In this document: positions 1 through 33,500 of the stretch, one piece after another
Position numbering within the stretch: position 1 is the stretch's first letter
Layout: each line of letters begins with the position of its first letter
Assembly (NCBI GenBank): GCA_977017575.1
Contig: CDRNVI010000019.1
Span: 1 to 64,000, forward strand
Direction: 5' to 3'
DNA: 64,000 nt
Source of the DNA: Paramoeba atlantica
Taxonomy: Eukaryota; Protista; Discosea
Notes under the pieces: generated by a model
Database searches by the model: none
What the model was told of the DNA's origin: nothing
Seen by the model: the letters and a program-made list of their open reading frames with translations, nothing else
Translations under genes and position numbers: made by a program

Positions 1-3000
1 GGTTACTTGGCATTACTGTTCTGCTCACTATAACACCACCGGTATCCGAAACCTCATAGTGGAAACTACCTGACCCGGACAATGCCTCAATGGTAATTTC
101 AGCGTCGGGGGAAACGGAACAATCCAATAATTTTGTAAGTGAAACATCAGCTTCAAGAAACGGATGTACGGTAACCGCACTTGCATCGGTACAGCCATTA
201 CTGTCTCTAATGGAAACAGAGTAAATTCCGGGCGACACATTCGTGAATACCCCCCCGTTGTCATAGTAATTGGCCCCTCCATCTAGGGAGTAAAATATTT
301 GAGCCGCTCCACTAGTGGCAGTTATAGTAACTGTAGCAGGGTTACTACAATTGTCTATGCTCAAACCTGTAATGTTTGGATTGGGTGTCAAGGTCAAGGC
401 TACAGTGCCCAAAGGCGTTGAACACCCATACTGATCTTCAATGGTAACGTCGTAGTTCCCTGCAGGAGAATTTGCTGGAATCTCAACAGGATTGTCCGAA
501 GTAGAGGTAATGGTTACAAACGGCGCTGGTCCGGTTACGGTATAGGTGTAAGTTCCACCTCCACCTAGAGGGCTCTGGACCTGTATCAACCCGGGGTTGT
601 CACAGCTAATATTCTGTAGGACAACTGGGGTTCCTGTTAAGGGGTCCAATTCGTCCAGAAATTCGTTTTCAGTAGCACCAACACAGCTGTCAACACCACC
701 ATCAACTTCAACGACTTCAATGAAGTAGTTTCCAGATGCAAGGCTATTTACGGTTACATCCTGAGGAGAGGTGTAAGGCACATTTCCTCCGCTATTGGCA
801 ACAGCAACTGGGACACCGGTGCTCATATCATAAACCGTCCATCTGAACTCCGTTCCGAAGGGAGCCTGGTTGTCGGTAACTGTATAGGTAATACTTCCAT
901 TGCTTGCGCCATCACATGATGGTGTAATTGCAGAGGTAATTTCTAAAGGAATCGCTATTAAGTCGTTTACATTGACGCTACTTTCCCTAACACATCCCGC
1001 AAAATCCCTAACGTAGAAGGTGTATGTTCTACCTGGTACCAAGCCAACAAACGTGTGGGTGATGCCCAGAGCTAGTGGGGCAGTCCACGCTGCCGTGGCT
1101 GGGTTAAAGTTGGCCGGGTCATCCGAGTAGGCATATTCATAGGGTGCAGTACCGTTTTGTCCTCTTACAGTTACCTGAAGTTCGTTACAATTGACCACAA
1201 TGGGCAAAATGGTAATATCCAAGTCATCCAAAGGATAGGGAATGATAAATGGAGGGAAATCTGTTTGACACACCGTATTTCCAAAACCGTCCACAGTTCT
1301 CATGGATGGGTTTACAACATTACCAGAGGCATATCCTGTAAAGCGATCTGTAGTTCCGGGAATACTATTGTCTCCGGTCCATGTGGCACCACCATCTGCA
1401 CTAAATTCAATGGTTCCCAAAGTACCGGGATAAGCGGTAAATTCAAATCCGAAATCATTGGGATCTCCAGTACAAGTAGCAGGTGTAACTCCAAGAATGG
1501 TTGCTGTTAGTTCATCAGGGTTGGCAATGTTTATAGGGGTATCCGTTACGGCACAACCAGTCGCATCTATAACGTTGACTGTGTAGTTACCCGGCATTAA
1601 GTTGAAATAGGACCTGCTAGATACTAACACGTTAGTATCTGTTTGGTTGCCAGCCCCCCCATTATCTAAATCAACAATCTGAATGATATATGGACTGATA
1701 CCTGAAGTAATATCCACCTGAATTGAACCCAATCCATCATGACACAACGGGTCAGTTGGGGTATTGGTAATGGTCAACGGTGTGGCTGGATTAACAGTTA
1801 CAGTTTCCATAAACTCGCAGAAAGGCACAGTTGCTGAGTTGTCTCGAACGTAAACGTCGTAGTCTCCATCATTTCCAGCAGTAACCGTGAAGGTGCTTGT
1901 GGTTGAGAACAGGCCAGTTGGACTTGTTGTTGTTGGCACAAAAGCATATTCCAAGTTGGGTACTCCGCCAGATGCCGTTACCGCAATACTTCCGTCTGCG
2001 CAAGTACTGATGTCAACAACATCAACAGTAGCTACCAAAGCAGTGTTAATAGTTACGTTTTGCAAGGTTCCAGTACAGCCAAAACCGTCCCTAACATTAA
2101 TAGTGTAGTTTCCTGCGGCCAAGCCCGAAAAGGTATGTGTTGTGGAAGTGGCTGGTGAAGGAGTAATCCAAGGACCACCATCCAAACTAAACTGATAATC
2201 ACTATTTCCAGTAGTTACGTCCACTTGAATGGTTCCGTCGTTATTTCCACTGTAACAAGCTGTTGGAGTAGAAGTAAACACTATTGGAGTTGGGGGTGAC
2301 CACAGTAAGGGCCACATCAATAGGGTCTTCACATAAGTTAGTATCTCTTGCTCTAACAATATAATCTCCGGCAGTAAGTCCCGTAAAGGCATTTGAGTTT
2401 TGGTAGGCCGTTAATATTGTTCCAATGTTATCTTCCAACTGATATTCATAAGCTGGTGTTCCTCCTGTTGCTGTAGCCGTTATGGTGGCTCCGCCATTAG
2501 TACAGGTCAAAACATTGGTAATCGATGCTGATGTTACCACAACGGCGGGTTCCGATAAATTTTGATTGAGAGTAGTGGTACATGTATTGTCTAAAACATC
2601 TCGAATTTCAATGGAATGAGCACCAGCCGAAAGGGTATTTATGGTTACTGGGCTGGTCATAGAAACAGTAAATGGACCTATAGCACCAAGACGGTATTCA
2701 AAACCGTTTACAACATCAAAGTTGTCCACTTCAAAGGTAATGGACCCATCGGCACCAGCATTACAGCTGATATCTGAGAATGCTATGATATTAGCGCCAA
2801 GTGCATTGCCCGGCTCTACGGTAACTGTAGTTTGTGTAACACAATCACTGCCGTAATCCACGTCTATGGTATGTGTGCCAACAGTTACGTTACTAAAGAG
2901 GTTGCTTGCCTGAGCTGCCCCCCCATTTAGGCTGTATGTGTAGCTTGGGTCGTTTGGAAGCACCGTAATTTCTCCTGTTCCGTCACAATTATAAATGACG

Positions 3001-3650
3001 GTAGTGGTTAAAGTTGGTTCAACGGGCAGCGGAGCTATAATTACATCAAGAAGCGTAATAAAGCATCCAATTTCATTGGCATCCCTAACTTGAATGGTAT
3101 ACGTTCCGTCCGTTAACCCTGTGAATACAGTTCCTCCTGTTGTGGCTACAGTCCAAGGCCCACCATTAATATTGTATTGGTAATCTCCCGACCCACCTGT
3201 GGTTGGTGTTACACTTCCAACAGTAATTTCACCCAATTGTAAACAGGTATAACTTTGAGTCTGTTGGGCTTCAGCCACTAATTGATTTGGCTCAGTAACG
3301 GTTACTGTTCCTGTTGTTTCACAATTATTGGCATCCCTGATTCTTAGGTTATATGTTCCTTGGCTGAGGTTGATAAAGTTTCCGGATACCTGATAATTTG
3401 TGCCGTTGTCAATACTGAATTGATATGGAGCCTCTCCGCCTGAAGCCACCAAAGTGATGGTTCCATCGGACCCCCCAAAACAGCTTACAGGGGTAAAACT
3501 TGGGGTAATAACCAATGGAGCATCTTGTACAATAGTAATATCAAATGAAGCTTCACAGAAACCAGCCCCTCCATTATTATCCCGGATATACACATCATAA
3601 TCTCCGGCTCCGGTTGCGGTCACAGGGTTTGTGGCAGCAAAGTCTACGTG
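1..3650 (-). CDS. Bacterial (Flavobacteriaceae-like) SprB-repeat / T9SS large adhesin fragment, open at both ends, with a frameshift near 2290
   Basis: ORF 2241-3803 has repeated SprB/Ig-like units (VSCFGGSDGTITLVASGGEAPYQFSIDNG...Y.LRIRDANNC). Manual translation shows the reading continues in a shifted frame (TPTPIVFTSTPTACYSGNNDGTIQV...) toward position 1. One extra C in a C-run near 2290 explains the shift. The poly-K N-terminus in the ORF track is low-complexity junction sequence. Confidence 0.85.
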
Positions 3651-3985
3651 TGTTTTCTTCTTTTTCATTTTCTTCTGGTTTTTCTTCTTCTTCTTCTTTT
3701 TCTTCTTGTTTTTCTTCTTCTTCTTCTTCTTCTTTTTCTTCTTCTTGTTTTTCTTCTTTTTCTTTTTTTCCTTCTTCTTCTTGTTTTTCTTCTTCTTTTT
3801 CATTGTCTCTTCTTCTTCGTTTCTTACGCGTTGCTTTTGTATTCTTATGGGGAGAGGGTGAAGAGGAAGAAAAAAGCGAAAAAGGGAAAAAGAGAAAAAA
3901 AAGAAGACGAAGCCGAAGCGTTTCTTCCTTTTTCGGTCTTCGTAGGAGAAGAGGAAGCAGGAGATGAGGGGGAGGAGGAGGAGGC
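3650..3985. repeat. Low-complexity TTC/GAA tract at the junction between bacterial and eukaryotic sequence
   Basis: Degenerate (TTC)n/(TTTTTC)n directly visible; gives poly-K/poly-F/poly-E pseudo-ORFs. Confidence 0.9.
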
Positions 3986-4624: not shown

Positions 4625-6665
4625 TTAAGTACCTACTCGTTCGAAGTAATACACGTAGGCCGATTCGAAGGGAGGAGCCACGCATTTTCTTACCTTGCTA
4701 TCGTCATATGAAAACCATCCTTGCCCGGGAAGCAGTAAATAGGCCACATAATGTCCACACTCAGCATTTGGCCCCAAATGGGTAATCATTCCACGTAGAA
4801 TGTATCCGAATAAGGGAGTGGTACCTTCGCTTTTGTCGTTAGAGCGCGGTCCATCACTGGGCAAACCCGTAGGTGTGTAGGGAGCTCCAAGAAAGCGCAG
4901 GTATAAGCGCCAGCGACGCTTCCAGGTTGCCTCCCACTCGCTTGAGCGCCTCCTCTGCCAAGTCCTGTGGCACATCCAAGGAAATAAGTTGAGCCAAAGT
5001 CACTTCGGGAAGCGAATTCTCTTGCATAGTATCGCGCGACTCATGGCTAGTACACATTTTTGAAGGATCAGCGTTTTTGAAATCTGAGTATTGCACCGAA
5101 GAAAAATTCAGCACCTCTGAGTTCAACCCTTTAACAGCGACGCCCACCTTCTTTACTTCTTGTTTATCTTGATCCCAGTAGAATCTTTGTAGGCTTACAA
5201 ACAGAATAGGAGGAAAACGCAACACGGAATTCGATAGAGTATGAGAAGTACCCTTGCACTCAGCGCATGTGCGGTATTGTGTGTAAGGCCTTGCAAACTC
5301 TTTAAGACAATCCTGAAATGAGATTTGAGGAAAGAAATTTGAATGATTCCAGTTTTTATGTTTCGGCACGCTGGGTAGTGGAACCGACATTGTGAAGTGT
5401 CGCTCGATGTTATATTCTAATTTATGGCATCCGTCGCACTTACGACGTTCCAGCACATAAATTGCATGGCTTGAATTTAAGTCCAATCCACTTTGATAAG
5501 ATTCGTAGGATAATTTCTCCAAAAAGAATTGTATGAACTCATCCACATCGTTTTGAACAGGGGCCTCAAACCTTGTTCCCTTCAACCATGGGATCTTGAA
5601 ATGATGAACGTGTAAAGGAGAATCTGCTGACGCGCAACTGCTCAGTAAACTATTGGCTACTTTTATTAACTGGCATGTGGGACAGTGAAGCTCACCATTC
5701 GGATGAGAAAGCATAATATGTCTCAGGCATGATTCCGTAGAGTAGGCGTTGCCAACGAACTTTGAAGCAAAGAACATGTGCAAGGCGCATGCTATGTAAC
5801 ACGTATTGCCAGTGTTTTTGAAACCTACTAGATGTCTGCCTACCACAGGATGTTCTTCGTCTCTCGCCTCTTCAATACTAGTTTCTTTAAAGGTCTTCGT
5901 TGCGTGACTAGCCTCAATTTCCCGTGTTGTGTTCTCAGTTTTCTTTTGACTTTCCATATTGATGCCATAGTTTCCAACGTGACTTTGTAAAGAATAATCT
6001 ACGATCGCATCATCGCAAGCATAGCACCATACATCCGCAGTTCCATCGGCCCGGATAGTGCCCAACTTTACTGCGATCGGATGATTGGTGAGCTGATAAT
6101 GTGCGCGCGCATGACCGCGCCCGCCAGTATCTCTTCTTCCGCATGCAACGTTTCCGCAAGTGAGGCATAACCAGAGGTTTTTGAATGCTGAACACAAACT
6201 ACACCTTTCCAAGGGTTTTGCTGATTTATTGGTTTGTGTGAGATCCATTTGGTGAAAACAATCAAATTTTATGGGTGCTTCTGGTATGTAGCATTCTGAG
6301 TCAGGAGGGTGAATTTGCTCCAACTTGCCTAAAATGTGGTTCATGGTTTCGTTTTTCAGGATATTTTTCCATCGGATGTCACAAAAATTACAAACCAAGG
6401 TTCCTTGGATAACATCAAATTTATTTTGCAGTGGATCTGATGTAACGCTAGCGCTAAGAAAGCAGAAGTGATCTGGAGAACGCTTCCCGTGTGCTGCAAT
6501 ATGTGAAGAACAGTATGCACTAAAGCAAGTTAAGCAAATGTGAATTGTTACTTTTGAAAGACCCAAAAAACAATACGAACATTCATTGGTCAATTTTTCG
6601 AAGGAGGAGCAAGTTTTGGCGCACAAGGAAATGCACAGATGAGAGCATATATTTTCTTCCAACAT
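4625..6665 (-). CDS. UBP14: Ubiquitin C-terminal hydrolase, USP5/13/UBP14 family, frameshifted near 4900
   Basis: Two ZnF-UBP domains (CLTCGNVACGRRDTGGRGHARAHY...DVWCYACDD), Cys box GFKNTGNTCY, a UBA-like segment, and the His box HLGPNAECGHYV...WFSYDDSKV in the overlapping ORF 4625-4975. Confidence 0.85.
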
Positions 6666-9811: not shown

Positions 9812-10275
9812 TGCTCCCGGTGAGGCCCCGGAGTTGCGAGAGGCCTCCATACCCCACAACTACCACCTTCCCCCCCTATTTAGCGGGGGTCGCGCGAGCG
9901 ACCCCTGATAAATGGGGGGAAGGTGGTAGTTGTTTTGGGGGAAATGAGAGGCCGAACGCACGGAGGGGCCGGCCGGGCCACTGATTCACGTGAAAGTGTG
10001 ACACCCAAAAACTAAACCTAGATCTTGTTTACCCGTCTGCACAACAGAACCGTAAATGGCACGTAAAGATGGTTGGCCGAGGTACCCAATAAATTCACCT
10101 TTGCTCCCGGTGAGGCCCCGGAGTTGCGAGAGGCCTCCATACCCCACAACTACCACCTTCCCCCCCTATTTAGCGGGGGTCGCGCGAGCGACCCCTGATA
10201 AATGGGGGGAAGGTGGTAGTTGTTTTGGGGAATATGAGAGGCCGAACGCACGGAGGGGCCGGCCGGGCCAATGAA
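9812..10275. repeat. Two direct copies (290-bp period) of hairpin module C
   Basis: CAACTACCACCTTCCCCCC..ATTTA-GGGGTCGC-GCGA-GCGACCCC-TAAAT-GGGGGGAAGGTGGTAGTTG at 9842-9953 and ~10132-10243. Reverse copy at ~50135-50325; half copies at 12460-12530, 16640-16735 and 49975-50065. Confidence 0.85.
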
Positions 10276-10360
10276 CCCAGACACCACACCCAACCCCTAG
10301 CAAAGCCTAGACCTTGTTTACCCGTTTGCAAGACAAGAATGTGTGTCGTTAGTGGGAAGC

Positions 10361-10775
10361 AATATGCATTATCAATGTGCTATATGCAATATCAATGTGC
10401 TATATGCATTATCAATGTGCTATATGCATTATCAATGTGCTATATGCATTATCAATGTGCTATATGCATTATCAATGTGCTATATGCATTATCAATGTGC
10501 TATATGCAATATCAATGTGCTATATGCATTATCAATGTGCTATATGCATTATCAATGTGCCGCTTAATATGCATTATCAATGTGCCGCTTAGTATGCATT
10601 ATCAATGTGCTATATGCATTATCAATGTGCTATATGCATTATCAATGTGCTATATGCATTATCAATGTGCTATATGCATTATCAATGTGCTATATGCAAT
10701 ATCAATGTGCTATATGCATTATCAATGTGCTATATGCATTATCAATGTGCCGCTTAGTATGCATTATCAATGTGC
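10361..10775. repeat. 20-bp minisatellite S1, opposite orientation to 9490-9765
   Basis: (TATATGCATTATCAATGTGC)n, about 20 units. Confidence 0.95.
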
Positions 10776-10784
10776 GGGCGCCGG

Positions 10785-11513
10785 GGGGTCCAGGGGGGGG
10801 GGTCCAGGGGGGGGGCATGGTCGAGCAAATTTTTTCGAAAAAATTAGTTTTCGAAAAAAAACCGCAGAAAGGGTAGCCGGGGTCTTGGCGCGCATTTTCC
10901 ACCCCCCTACCCGGGGGTGACCTCCCCACGTATCCGCAGGACGGGTCCGCCAAGTTCGGATTTTTTCGGAAAAAAATTTTTAAAAAAAATTTCAACTTGG
11001 CGAAAAAAATGACAAAAAAAATATTTTTCCAAAATCGTTTCCCCTATTGTATTTTGATAGTTTGGGATCTACACTAGCTTTCTCCGCAGTTGCTTTCGCA
11101 AGGTATCACTTCTTCGAACCGTGGTGCGCCCCTCAAAATGACCCATGTTTGACTAAAAAAGGTGAAAAAGTATTTTTCGGACCTAAAGGGGCATTTTTGT
11201 GTCGAAAGAATGGTATGGTTGGAGTCGTATTCTCTACCCAATACGTTCGGTAGGCTTTCAATCATGCCTACGAGTGATTTCCCATGCGCAAATGTCGGAT
11301 TTAGTGCTCTGAGAGCAAAAATATGCGAAAATGACCCTATTTGTACCCGAAATTCGGCTATTTTTGGCTATAATCTTTCCGTTTTCCAGGCCAAATTTTC
11401 TTTTTTAGGCTCTTCGTTAAACGCGGCGGTAGTTTTCAACGCGAAGAGCGCAGCATGAGTGACTTCTAAGTTGAAAACAACCACCGCGTTTAACGAAGAG
11501 CCTAAAAAAGAAA
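10785..11513 (+). repeat. Dispersed module A (~730 bp) ending in a ~115-bp palindrome
   Basis: Copies at 15885-16614, 17022-17633 (diverged), 46623-47340 (reverse) and 47870-48335 (rearranged). Confidence 0.85.
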
Positions 11514-14613: not shown

Positions 14614-14693
14614 TGACAAGAGAGGGGTTCGAACCCTCGCCCCGAAGGAGTAGTACCTGAAACTACCGTCTTAGACCACTCGACCATCTTGCC
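14614..14693 (-). tRNA. tRNA-Leu(CAG)
   Basis: GGCAAGATGGTCGAGTGGTCTAAG...GTAGT-TTCAGGT-ACTAC, variable arm CC-TTCG-GG, T-loop TTCGAAC. Confidence 0.93.
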
Positions 14694-14752
14694 TGCTACA
14701 GAAAAGCTAAGAGCTCTCCACAAGGTGTCAGAGTCAGCCATGAGCTGCAAAA

Positions 14753-14824
14753 TGCGCACGCCGGGAGTCGAACCCGGTCCGCGTGCTTGGAAGGCACGCA
14801 TCCTAACCGTTAGACTACGTGCGC
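14753..14824 (-). tRNA. tRNA-Gly(TCC)
   Basis: GCGCACG acceptor, anticodon arm CGTGC-CTTCCAA-GCACG, GGTTCGACTCC. Confidence 0.95.
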
Positions 14825-14897
14825 AACTGCACGAACGGAAACATGGTAAGCCTCTCTGAACCGTATAGGAAGGAGCTGCCTCAACTACAGGAGAAAA

Positions 14898-14969
14898 CTC
14901 CGCTGCCGGGGATCGAACCCGGATTTTCAGGGTGAAAGCCTGATGTTCTAACCATTATACTACAGCGGA
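14898..14969 (-). tRNA. tRNA-Glu(TTC)
   Basis: TCCGCTG acceptor, TCAGG-CTTTCAC-CCTGA, GGTTCGATCCC. Confidence 0.95.
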
Positions 14970-15023: not shown

Positions 15024-15095
15024 TGATCGCGACAGGGATCGAACCTGCAACCGCCTGATCCGTAGTCAGACGCTCTACCATTGAGCCACGCGACC
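15024..15095 (-). tRNA. tRNA-Arg(ACG)
   Basis: GGTCGCG acceptor, TCTGA-CTACGGA-TCAGG, GGTTCGATCCC. Confidence 0.95.
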
Positions 15096-15168: not shown

Positions 15169-15242
15169 GCTCCTGTGGCCTAGTTGGTTATGGCATTGGT
15201 CTTATGAGCCGAGGATCGCGGGTTCGATCCCCGCCAGGAGCA
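15169..15242 (+). tRNA. tRNA-Ile(TAT), intronless
   Basis: GCTCCTG acceptor, TTGGT-CTTATGA-GCCGA, GGTTCGATCCC. The UAU anticodon is eukaryote-type. Confidence 0.92.
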
Positions 15243-15245
15243 TTT

Positions 15246-15331
15246 GCCGCGACGATCCTCGCTGGTGCGGGGGACAGGCTTCAAACCTGTAGGTGGGAAA
15301 TCCACAGCTGTTCGATTCGGCCCTCGCGGTG
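15246..15331 (+). tRNA. tRNA-Sec(TCA), eukaryotic 9/4 fold
   Basis: Anticodon arm ACAGG-CTTCAAA-CCTGT; 6-bp D stem CCTCGC-TGGT-GCGGGG; long variable arm GTGGG-AAA-TCCAC; 4-bp T stem GCTG-TTCGATT-CGGC; 9-bp acceptor with one mismatch; discriminator G; TTTTT immediately after. Confidence 0.93.
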
Positions 15332-15336
15332 TTTTT
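15332..15336 (+). terminator. Pol III oligo-T terminator after tRNA-Sec
   Basis: TTTTT directly 3' of the discriminator base. Confidence 0.7.
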
Positions 15337-15524
15337 ACCGAATACCGTTGCACCGCCTGACTTTTCTCACCGAAAAATGCGTTTTGCCAGGCCCCGCGGA
15401 AGCTTTCTAATACCGTATACCCCGGTGTAGAAGTAAAGGACTTTTGCATAAGTAAATGATAAAGTGCCGCCCCCTGTGCCGCCCTCTCTTCCACTCCCTG
15501 TGCCGCCCCTCATGCCGTCTCCGG

Positions 15525-15711
15525 TGGAAGTATAGGAGTATTGCATAAGTATAGGAATCTTGCATAAGTATAGGAATATTGCATAAGTATAGGAATATTG
15601 CATAAGTATAGGAATAATGCATAAGTAAAGGAATAATGCATAAGTAAAGGAATAAAGCATAAGTAAAGGAATAATGCATAAGTAAAGGAATAATGCATAA
15701 GTAAAGGAATA
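15525..15711. repeat. 19-bp minisatellite S2 (GCATAAGTATAGGAATATT / GCATAAGTAAAGGAATAAT)
   Basis: About 10 units; the unit variant switches midway. Confidence 0.93.
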
Positions 15712-16614
15712 ATTGCGGTGGTTGTAAAACTACCGCTCTACACTCGATTATTGAAAAAAAAGTGAACAAAAACAGTGAAAATATAAAGAGGAACAAAGTA
15801 ATATAATAGAAGAAAAAAATATAAAAGGGGGCTCCGGTGGTCCAAAACTGAAAAAAAAATTGAAAAAAATTGGGGGTCCATGGGGGGGGTCCAGGGGGGG
15901 GGGTCCAGGGGGGGGGGCATGGTCGAGCAAATTTTTTCGAAAAAATTAGTTTTCGAAAAAAAACCGCAGAAAGGGTAGCCGGGGTCTTGGCGCGCATTTT
16001 CCACCCCCCCACCCGGGGGTGACCCCCCCGCGTATCCGCAGGACGGGTCCGCCAAGTTCGGATTTTTTCGGAAAAAAATCTTTGAAAAAAATTTCAACTT
16101 GGCGAAAAAAATGACAAAAAAAATATTTTTCCAAAATCGTTTCCTCTATTGTATTTTGATAGTTTGGGACCTACACTAGCTTTCTACGCAGTTATTTTCG
16201 CAAGGTATCACTTCTTCGAACTGTGGTGCGCCCCCTAAAATGACCCATTTTTGACTAAAAAAGGTGAAAAAGTATTTTTCGGACCTAAAGGGGCATTTTT
16301 GTGTCGAAAGAATGGTATGGTTGGAGTCGCATTCTCTACCCAATACGTTCGGTAGGCTTTCATTCATGCCTGCGAGTGATTTCCCACGCGCAAATGTCGG
16401 ATTTAGTGCTCTGAGAGCAAAAATATGCGAAAATGACCCCATTTGTACCCGAAATTCGGCCATTTTTGGCTATAATCTTTCCGTTTTCCAGGCTAAATTT
16501 TCTTTTTTAGGCTCTTCGTTAAACGCGGCGGTAGTTTTCAACGCGAAGCGCGCAGCATGAGTGACTTCTAAGTTGAAAGCAACCACCGCGTTTAACGAAG
16601 AGCCTAAAAAAGAA
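15712..16614 (+). mobile_element. Complete B+A non-coding element (~900 bp) with a short 5' hairpin and a long 3' palindrome; putative non-autonomous element
   Basis: The same contiguous unit is in reverse at 46623-47497, and is split by satellites and module C at 9296-11513. No TIR/TSD pair was recognised; mobility is inferred from dispersal. Confidence 0.6.
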
Positions 16615-31875: not shown

Positions 31876-31948
31876 CACTTTGAATACTCGCTTTTTATCA
31901 ACCAAAAAAATTGGTAAATAAAAGTCATGATGAGTTTGAGTCAAAGTG
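31876..31948 (-). promoter_or_regulatory. Candidate eukaryotic SECIS element in the SPS2 3' UTR
   Basis: Minus strand: CACTTTGA...ATGA-CTTTTATTTACC-AA-TTTTTTT-GGTTGATAAAAAGC-GA-GTAT-TCAAAGTG. Spacing is AUGA-N12-AA-N21-GA, with a pairable helix II and an 8-bp helix I. Confidence 0.6.
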
Positions 31949-32141
31949 TTCACAGAAAAACACTCATAGGTGCTTGTATGCATACTAAATATGTATGCTT
32001 GTGTCCGCACTGACTTGTACCTCTATATAAGAGTTATTTCGATGAATTCATTATCCTTCGTGTTACTTGTAAACCGGAATGTGAAGAAGAAAAATGAACC
32101 GGAGCTTAAAATTTAACAGAATGGCATAGCCCTTCTTTCCC

Positions 32142-33500
32142 TCAAAGTGCAGGTTGCACCTTCGTAGCGTGTGGCTCCTCATTTTGGCTTACATCAAGAA
32201 AAAAGTCTTGCGCTGATACATCGACCACAATTACATTGGAGAAACCAGAAGCTGCTTCTTTTTGAACATCTATGACCTCATGCTGGTGTGCTTTCATTCC
32301 ATATACTTTCCTTGCAATGGTATAATCCTCGTCGCTCGAATACAGCTCAGCAAGAGTCTGATTGCAAATCAATGTGCTACCAGTAGTGAGAGATTCATCA
32401 GAATTTAAACTTGAGTCTACAGGTCGAACGCAACCCACAATCCAACCACGAATGCGATCAAGCTCTTCCAATTCCTTTAAGAAAGAGGTGGCTATCGAGA
32501 TATTTGCAAGAGCAATTAAGAGACCACCGGATGTTTCCACACTGCGACCCTCCAAAAGGACGTTACTTTGTTTTGTTGTTCCAGCTATGCACGGGAGAGT
32601 ATGTATTTGTAGACGTAATGAACTTCTTTGCGCTTCGGCAAGATTTGTAGCGTGTCCGAGTATACCATACCCTGTTATATCTGTAGCCCCATGTGCCCTA
32701 TATTTGTGCATAAGACGAGCAGCCGTACGGTTATGATGCAACATAGAACGAACAGCTAGCTGATAATCTTCAATGATTTCATTTGCTTCCGCTAGGCTGG
32801 AAACTTCGTTCCTGTCTCGAGCAACGTTATACCGATGTACGGCAGGTTGCGTTCCTAACGGCTTCGTCAGAACCAGTACATCCCCAACTTCGAGTCCGCT
32901 GGGTGGAATAAAGTCATCCTCGTGCACTACGGCGGTTGCGACTCCCCCAATTATGGGCCAGGGGTTCAGTATTGTTTGACCGCCTGAGACCTGACAATCA
33001 GCTTGACGCATTCCGTCCGCAAAGCCTTGCATCATAAGACGTGTAACAGTATTTCGTATGTCACCACATATTTCTGTACAACTACCTACTAACATTAATG
33101 TGGTATCAGCACGATCTATTCCAAGGCTGTATACATCAGATAAGACGTTAGCAGCTCCAATAAGACCTTGCGTATAAGGATCGTCAACGAGAGGAAAGAA
33201 GAAGTCTGTGGTTGACACAATGTACAGAGTATGACCATGGATCTTGCTCAGTGGTTTAATCGAACAGTCGATATTGTCAGAATTAGTAACACAATGAATT
33301 CCTGAACTTTCTAAAAGATTTTTAAGAACACAGCGGGGTACTTTGCAACCTCAGCCTCGCAAGGATGAGTATTTCGTAAGACGAAAATCAAGGGGCAAAT
33401 CACTTGTCTTCGTAGATGTCGAGTTCGCCTCAGCAATGCAGTTGAAGTTGATAGCTTTTTGCGAAATAGAGGCAGAGCTTCTATTTTCCACCTTATTCAT
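32142..33500 (-). CDS. SEPHS2: Selenophosphate synthetase 2, selenocysteine-containing (UGA at 33351-33353), 452 aa
   Basis: The track ORF (TTDFFFP, ANVLSDVY, GGQT..NPW, DITGYGILGH, ETSGGLL) extends upstream in frame to ATG 33500 through FRLTKYSSLRG-TGA-GCKVP, the SelD active-site G(U/C)GCK motif. Confidence 0.92.

Follow-up and report, generated by a model that had tools for sequence, protein, structure and literature searches.

Vertebrate tRNA-Sec genes are driven by a type-3-like promoter, which comprises a TATA element at about -30, a PSE at about -55 to -70, an activator element and an internal B box. To our knowledge, the route by which tRNA-Sec is transcribed has been tested in two groups only: vertebrates, where Pol III acts at an upstream promoter like that of U6 snRNA genes, and trypanosomatids, where Pol II or both polymerases are used. 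The tRNA-Sec genes of T. brucei, T. cruzi and L. major are flanked by protein genes within a polycistron and are made by Pol II or, in L. major, by both polymerases; the B box is described as deficient for T. brucei and L. major (PMC2943599, PMC12204681). Aeby et al. inferred that Pol III was the ancestral route for tRNA-Sec and that Pol II is a derived trait of trypanosomatids (PMC2943599). Closest in layout to the locus described here are the tandem tRNA genes of yeasts, which occur frequently among hemiascomycetes and also in S. pombe. The spacer of such a pair can be as short as 3 nt, and the terminator stands behind the second gene; only the upstream A and B boxes drive both genes, and the dimeric precursor is cut by the normal tRNA enzymes (PMC2566860). 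Examples are tRNA-Ser/tRNA-Met(i) of S. pombe, tRNA-Arg/tRNA-Asp of S. cerevisiae and pairs in Debaryomyces. Leader tRNAs also drive other dicistronic Pol III genes, namely tRNA-snoRNA genes in plants and tRNA-5S and tRNA-RUF70 genes in Yarrowia (PMC2566860).

Here we describe a tRNA-Sec gene that directly abuts another tRNA gene. In the window, by which we mean the whole 64,000-nucleotide stretch of DNA analysed, tRNA-Ile(UAU) and tRNA-Sec(UCA) form the plus-strand arm of a six-gene tRNA cluster whose other four genes lie on the minus strand (Table 1). The first-pass annotation had placed the end of Ile, the TTT spacer, Sec and the TTTTT run at exactly the positions tabulated, on which the sequence, ARAGORN and Rfam agree, and the two tRNA identities it had proposed are also called by both tools; the last nucleotide of Sec is 15330 or 15331 across the calls. 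The Sec gene scores above the RF01852 gathering score of 47 and combines all the hallmarks of a eukaryotic tRNA-Sec (score, 9/4 fold, D stem, anticodon, variable arm and G73). Its predicted cloverleaf is of the eukaryotic 9/4 type, with a 9-bp acceptor stem that contains one C-C mismatch, a 4-bp T stem, a 6-bp D stem closed by a 4-nt loop and a long variable arm. Fold prediction resolved the 176-nt Ile-Sec stretch into two separate cloverleaves.

Table 1. Coordinates of the Ile-Sec pair, its promoter boxes and T-runs, and the neighbouring tRNA genes in the window
Feature	Position	Strand	Evidence	Remarks
tRNA-Ile(UAU)	15169..15242	+	RF00005 65.6 bits, ARAGORN	Intact cloverleaf; proposed leader gene
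Anticodon loop of Ile gene	15201-15207	+		CTTATGA; G at position 37
Ile box A	15176..15187	+		TGGCCTAGTTGG; 12-nt variant, 0 mismatches
Ile box B	15221..15231	+		GGTTCGATCCC; 0 mismatches
TTT spacer between Ile and Sec	15243..15245	+	Sequence, T-run survey	Probably a weak Pol III terminator
tRNA-Sec(UCA)	15246..15331	+	RF01852 64.1 bits, fold, box scan	G73 discriminator at 15331; no A box
Sec box B	15309..15319	+		TGTTCGATTCG; core GTTCGATTC intact, both outer positions mismatched
TTTTT after Sec	15332..15336	+	Sequence, T-run survey	Putative Pol III terminator of the Ile-Sec unit
tRNA-Arg(ACG), divergent	15024..15095	-		73 bp upstream of Ile; spacing usual for divergent pairs in this genome
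tRNA-Leu(CAG), Gly(UCC), Glu(UUC), remaining cluster members	14614..14969	-	ARAGORN, Rfam	

Judging from a box scan of the genome's own clusters, box A at position 8 carries 0-1 mismatch in all 34 canonical tRNA genes checked, whereas the corresponding stretch of Sec carries 3-4, and we therefore regard Sec as having no A box. Both boxes of Ile were perfect in the same scan, and box B of Sec is no worse than those of Thr-AGU or elongator Met in this genome. No position was conserved, and hence no upstream promoter motif found, in the 60 nt upstream of 34 tRNA genes, which indicates that tRNA promoters in this genome are internal. The poor A box that had been expected of tRNA-Sec thus turns out to be missing altogether, with the B-box core kept, and the proposed geometry and promoter logic stand: perfect Ile boxes are followed by a Sec gene without an A box, there is no run of T4 or longer between the two genes, and T5 comes after Sec.

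The assembly (45.7 Mb, 248 contigs) holds a second copy of the cluster on contig C43, of identical layout and with 97.6% identity over about 2 kb, which differs by indels and by one substitution within Sec and is probably the other haplotype. Searches with RF01852 and, at the DNA level, with the Ile gene brought up no copies in the assembly beyond those in the window and on contig C43, so that Ile(UAU) and Sec are both effectively single-copy and always linked. The Ile gene, otherwise canonical, has an odd G at position 37; A37, the t6A site, is present in eight of eight other ANN-reading tRNA genes examined (Arg-CCU/UCU, Lys-UUU/CUU, Asn, Met, Thr and Ser-GCU). About 17 kb from tRNA-Sec, at 31876-33500 of the window, lies a selenophosphate synthetase gene, and two parts of the selenocysteine machinery are thus loosely linked.

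The host of the window looks kinetoplastid-like by sequence: the window contains long same-strand arrays of uninterrupted ORFs and a kinetoplastid PH-like domain. Two sister clusters pair a non-tRNA Pol III gene with a divergent tRNA gene upstream, in one case a 7SL gene (L010, 4602-4875, minus strand) with tRNA-Lys(UUU) (4971-5042, plus strand) at 95 bp, and in the other a U6 snRNA gene (L029, 2674-2777, plus strand) with tRNA-Arg(UCG) (2513-2584, minus strand) at 89 bp, which is the trypanosomatid layout of outside tRNA promoters (PMC2943599). In the window, by comparison with these 95 and 89 bp, the 5' end of the divergent Arg(ACG) gene lies 150 bp from Sec +1.

The assembly also contains a second eukaryote. 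A set of AT-rich contigs (33-39% GC; C137, C143, C144, C149, C161, C170, C172, C177 and C185, e.g. L013-L020) has its own tRNA set, which shares about 49-60 of 73-86 positions with window-type genes of the same anticodon; in this set of contigs, long T-runs (about T5 to T20) stand behind the tRNA genes, and LSU rRNA is present in many copies tens of kb apart. Because of this second tRNA set, our statistics were restricted to clusters of the window's style; a genome survey with RF00005 scored only 63 candidates, mostly from the second organism, and the statistics are therefore drawn from cluster genes. Many contigs among C108-C134 and C221 have in common tRNA clusters that are AT-rich and whose genes are separated by a few to about 25 nt; these contigs look like copies of an organelle genome, which, since it would encode tRNAs, is not a kinetoplastid mitochondrion. 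Contig C227, which looks bacterial or otherwise foreign, carries a tRNA-Phe gene with an encoded CCA end and no nearby T-run (L004, C227:8900-18899, at 1553-1625) and a tRNA-Gly(CCC) gene likewise without a T-run. Within the window itself, a 520-aa minus-strand ORF at 2241-3803 encodes SprB repeats (E 8e-21) and a Y_Y_Y domain, both typical of bacterial surface proteins, and sits inside the kinetoplastid-like gene array.

Spacing sets the Ile-Sec pair apart from its neighbours. In clusters of the window's style, the 18 gaps between tRNA genes on one strand, Ile-Sec included, were 3 nt (Ile-Sec), 30 nt and then 52-73 nt, with a median of 57; divergent gaps were 20, 72-75 and 106 nt. The 3-nt gap is an extreme outlier, unique in degree. 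Canonical genes with their own boxes do lie 20-30 nt from a neighbour, with the TFIIIB zone falling inside the neighbouring gene, and tight packing alone therefore does not require co-transcription. Packing is extreme at two loci: at L005 (4990-5162) the 5' ends of the divergent Ser-CGA and Arg-CCG genes are only 20 nt apart, and at L009 (4976-5143) the convergent Arg-UCU and Leu-UAA genes are separated by 13 nt, where a short palindromic T4...A4 spacer provides the T-run of both strands.

A genome-wide pattern search for further tight same-strand tRNA pairs, using a pattern that misses the 12-nt A-box variant, returned matches that were not tRNA pairs: some belonged to clusters of the AT-rich organelle-like contigs, and in the others a tRNA was followed, after 7-9 nt, by an element that resembles a tRNA and has A and B boxes. 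At L027 (C20:581418-581465), L028 (C54:755846-755892) and C109:46228-46276 a conserved element some 100 nt long, equipped with A and B boxes, starts 7-9 nt after a T4 run behind a copy of tRNA-Gly(UCC) or a remnant resembling a tRNA. No tRNA is called for this element, which could be a SINE of tRNA origin or a novel RNA made by Pol III.

How far transcription could pass from Ile into Sec depends on what a T3 run does in this organism. We surveyed the T-runs of 35 canonical tRNA genes with exact Rfam ends from clusters of the window's style, which is a sample and not a full census, and in most of them T4-T6 follows immediately 3' of the discriminator. The proximal run is only T3 in seven of the 35 (Arg-CCU, Arg-CCG, Gln-UUG, Trp, Ala-AGC, Arg-ACG and Ile-UAU), and in five of these seven it begins right at +1. 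Such placement is too regular for chance, and T3 is thus probably a weak terminator; it probably ends some transcripts in this genome and may even be an efficient terminator in this organism. Given a weak terminator that appears to have been selected, read-through from Ile to Sec would be partial at best. The description of TTT in the first-pass annotation as shorter than a terminator is overstated in view of the genes in which T3, mostly at +1, is the sole proximal run; with no T4 or longer run in the spacer, the premise becomes shakier but is not overturned. Between Arg-CCG, Gln-UUG or Ala-AGC and the tRNA gene that comes next on the same strand, 55-62 nt away, no T-run reaches T4, and transcripts of these three genes may also read through. 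In the TriTryps the minimum run is T4 across all 269 tRNA genes, which are taken as monocistronic (PMC2695483), and with human Pol III degenerate T-runs give partial termination with read-through (PMC3141230).

We then asked whether the arrangement recurs elsewhere. When metagenomes were scanned for a D arm and anticodon loop of Sec type preceded, at 0-30 nt, by the B box of a tRNA, a pattern that by itself requires a leader, one contig only was returned (L024). Its order is initiator tRNA-Met, 30 nt starting with T4, tRNA-Arg(CCU) with perfect boxes, 17 nt without a T-run, and tRNA-Sec; the Sec gene scores 76 bits, has no A box and a perfect B box, and is followed by T4 about 25 nt downstream. 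On sequence grounds this is one independent analogue, a second case with a different leader tRNA. The trio (2922-3200, minus strand) is convergent with a eukaryotic LSU rRNA gene (1-2348, plus strand), whose 3' end lies about 570 bp away, which carries about 600 nt of insertions relative to the Rfam model and of which only the conserved cores were matched in comparisons, at 75-94%. A protein word search with the ubiquitin hydrolase near the pair, run for synteny in relatives, gave matches of at most 32% identity, of which the named ones were fungal, and reached no related genome.

The best reading of the locus, to which we give somewhat more credence than doubt, is that Ile and Sec form a leaky dicistronic Pol III unit. 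From the anatomy, the promoter boxes, the spacing, the strand context and the one analogue we infer co-transcription, leaky termination at T3 and the following order of events. TFIIIC would bind the consensus A and B boxes of tRNA-Ile(UAU), possibly with some added affinity from the Sec B box, TFIIIB would be placed upstream of Ile, and Pol III would start there. Part of the polymerases would stop at the weak T3, giving an Ile precursor with a UUU end, for which the spacer supplies the 3' tail, while the remainder would pass through tRNA-Sec and stop at T5. RNase P, which is protein-only in kinetoplastids, would cut the longer transcript at Sec +1, and tRNase Z or an exonuclease would trim the 3' end of Ile, freeing both tRNAs; the RNase P cut would leave a UUU-OH tail on Ile, the same 3' end as termination at T3. 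The proposal that this amounts to a third expression strategy survives in part. It would be new for tRNA-Sec, and our literature search found no report of a dicistronic tRNA arrangement that involves tRNA-Sec or a kinetoplastid, but in yeasts dicistronic Pol III genes with a leading tRNA are well established (PMC2566860). Since tandem tRNA genes with spacers down to 3 nt are known there, the mechanism is of a known kind, and what is new is the tRNA-Sec cargo and the lineage.

The main rival, which we hold to be rather less likely, is that the two genes share a promoter without read-through: T3 would be a full terminator for Ile, and a separate Pol III start at or just before Sec +1 would be recruited by the Sec B box together with TFIIIC/TFIIIB, or a recycling polymerase, at the abutting Ile gene. 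T3 at +1 does recur among canonical genes here, but the spacer of the metagenome analogue lacks any T-run. Vertebrate tRNA-Sec starts at +1 (PMC2943599), the TTT/G junction would be a plausible start context, and the core of the Sec B box is intact; yet Sec has no A box to set the start site. Although the 20- and 30-nt gaps show that the TFIIIB zone of other genes can fall within an adjacent tRNA gene, TFIIIB serving Sec would collide with TFIIIC on the Ile B box. Finally, 7SL and U6 in this genome already have tRNA genes as outside promoters, but in the known cases the promoter tRNA gene diverges from the gene it serves and stands about 90-95 bp off, whereas Ile has the same orientation as Sec and abuts it.

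It is very improbable that Pol II makes this tRNA-Sec within a long polycistronic transcript, even though that is the experimentally shown route in Trypanosoma brucei (PMC2943599) and, in the passage of PMC11894013 that cites Padilla-Mejia 2015, contributes in L. major. Here Sec belongs to a tRNA cluster and is encoded on the plus strand, within a stretch of repeats that separates genes of the minus strand: the 9-20 kb region of the window is filled with 19-20-nt minisatellites and dispersed repeats, and the Pfam-supported ORFs on either side of Sec are on the minus strand, except for a retroelement downstream of it. Because Sec is opposite in strand to the flanking protein genes, read-through of the array would yield antisense RNA, which makes the trypanosome route unlikely. 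Several of the large plus-strand ORFs nearby coincide with these repeats, those at 10213-10920 and 15407-16012 with minisatellite arrays, and we therefore read them as artefacts and not genes. Moreover, Sec retains the core of its B box, which its counterparts in T. brucei and L. major do not, and a T5 run lies directly 3' of the gene. That the juxtaposition is accidental, or a decaying copy with no functional link between Ile and Sec, is scarcely credible. It is true that tRNA clusters here are very compact and rearranged by repeats, but both genes are intact, searches of the assembly gave no further copies, the linkage persists in the second copy although the flanks have diverged by 2.4%, and the 3-nt gap is a strong outlier.

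Taking the leaky dicistronic unit as the preferred reading, a broader one can be sketched, which we offer tentatively and ourselves doubt more than we believe. Riding behind a canonical leader might be a recurrent, selected answer to the missing A box of protist tRNA-Sec, counting two unrelated leaders, Ile(UAU) here and Arg(CCU) in contig L024, and might represent the ancestral Pol III state that preceded the Pol II route of trypanosomatids. The T3 spacer would then keep the Sec-to-Ile ratio low by attenuation, and the G37-bearing Ile(UAU) gene would perhaps be kept partly as a promoter or leader module. A kinetoplastid-like genome that has kept the Sec B box, in a Pol III tRNA cluster and next to an abutting canonical tRNA, fits the inference of Aeby et al. 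(PMC2943599). If the dicistronic unit is real, it would be a simple third route for tRNA-Sec and would extend tandem tRNA genes beyond fungi; the layout also raises the question whether T3 runs are leaky terminators in this lineage.

The locus can be set against each of the described systems. As in vertebrate tRNA-Sec, there is no functional A box, the B box is conserved and the gene appears to rely on something upstream, but here positions -1 to -77 are taken up by the TTT spacer and the body of Ile, with no TATA/PSE arrangement. With the tRNA-Sec of trypanosomatids it shares the lack of a working A box and a related lineage; unlike theirs, it lies in a six-tRNA cluster antisense to its neighbours and not embedded in a Pol II unit, and its B-box core is intact. 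The outside promoters of trypanosomatid U6, U3 and 7SL genes offer the parallel that the A and B boxes of a neighbouring tRNA gene would serve another Pol III gene, although those of the U6/7SL type are divergent and about 90-100 bp upstream, whereas Ile shares the strand of Sec and is separated from it by 3 nt. The tandem tRNA genes of yeasts match it in the shared strand and in a spacer of a few nucleotides, and their terminator behind the second gene would correspond to the T5 run here. They differ in that the downstream gene here is a tRNA-Sec without an A box, that a T3 run makes up the spacer, that the host is a kinetoplastid-like protist and that co-transcription is a prediction. Lastly, as in the heterologous genes led by a tRNA, the leader would supply a promoter to an RNA gene without a complete one of its own, but, unlike in the tRNA-led genes of plants and Yarrowia, the cargo is itself a tRNA that keeps its B box.
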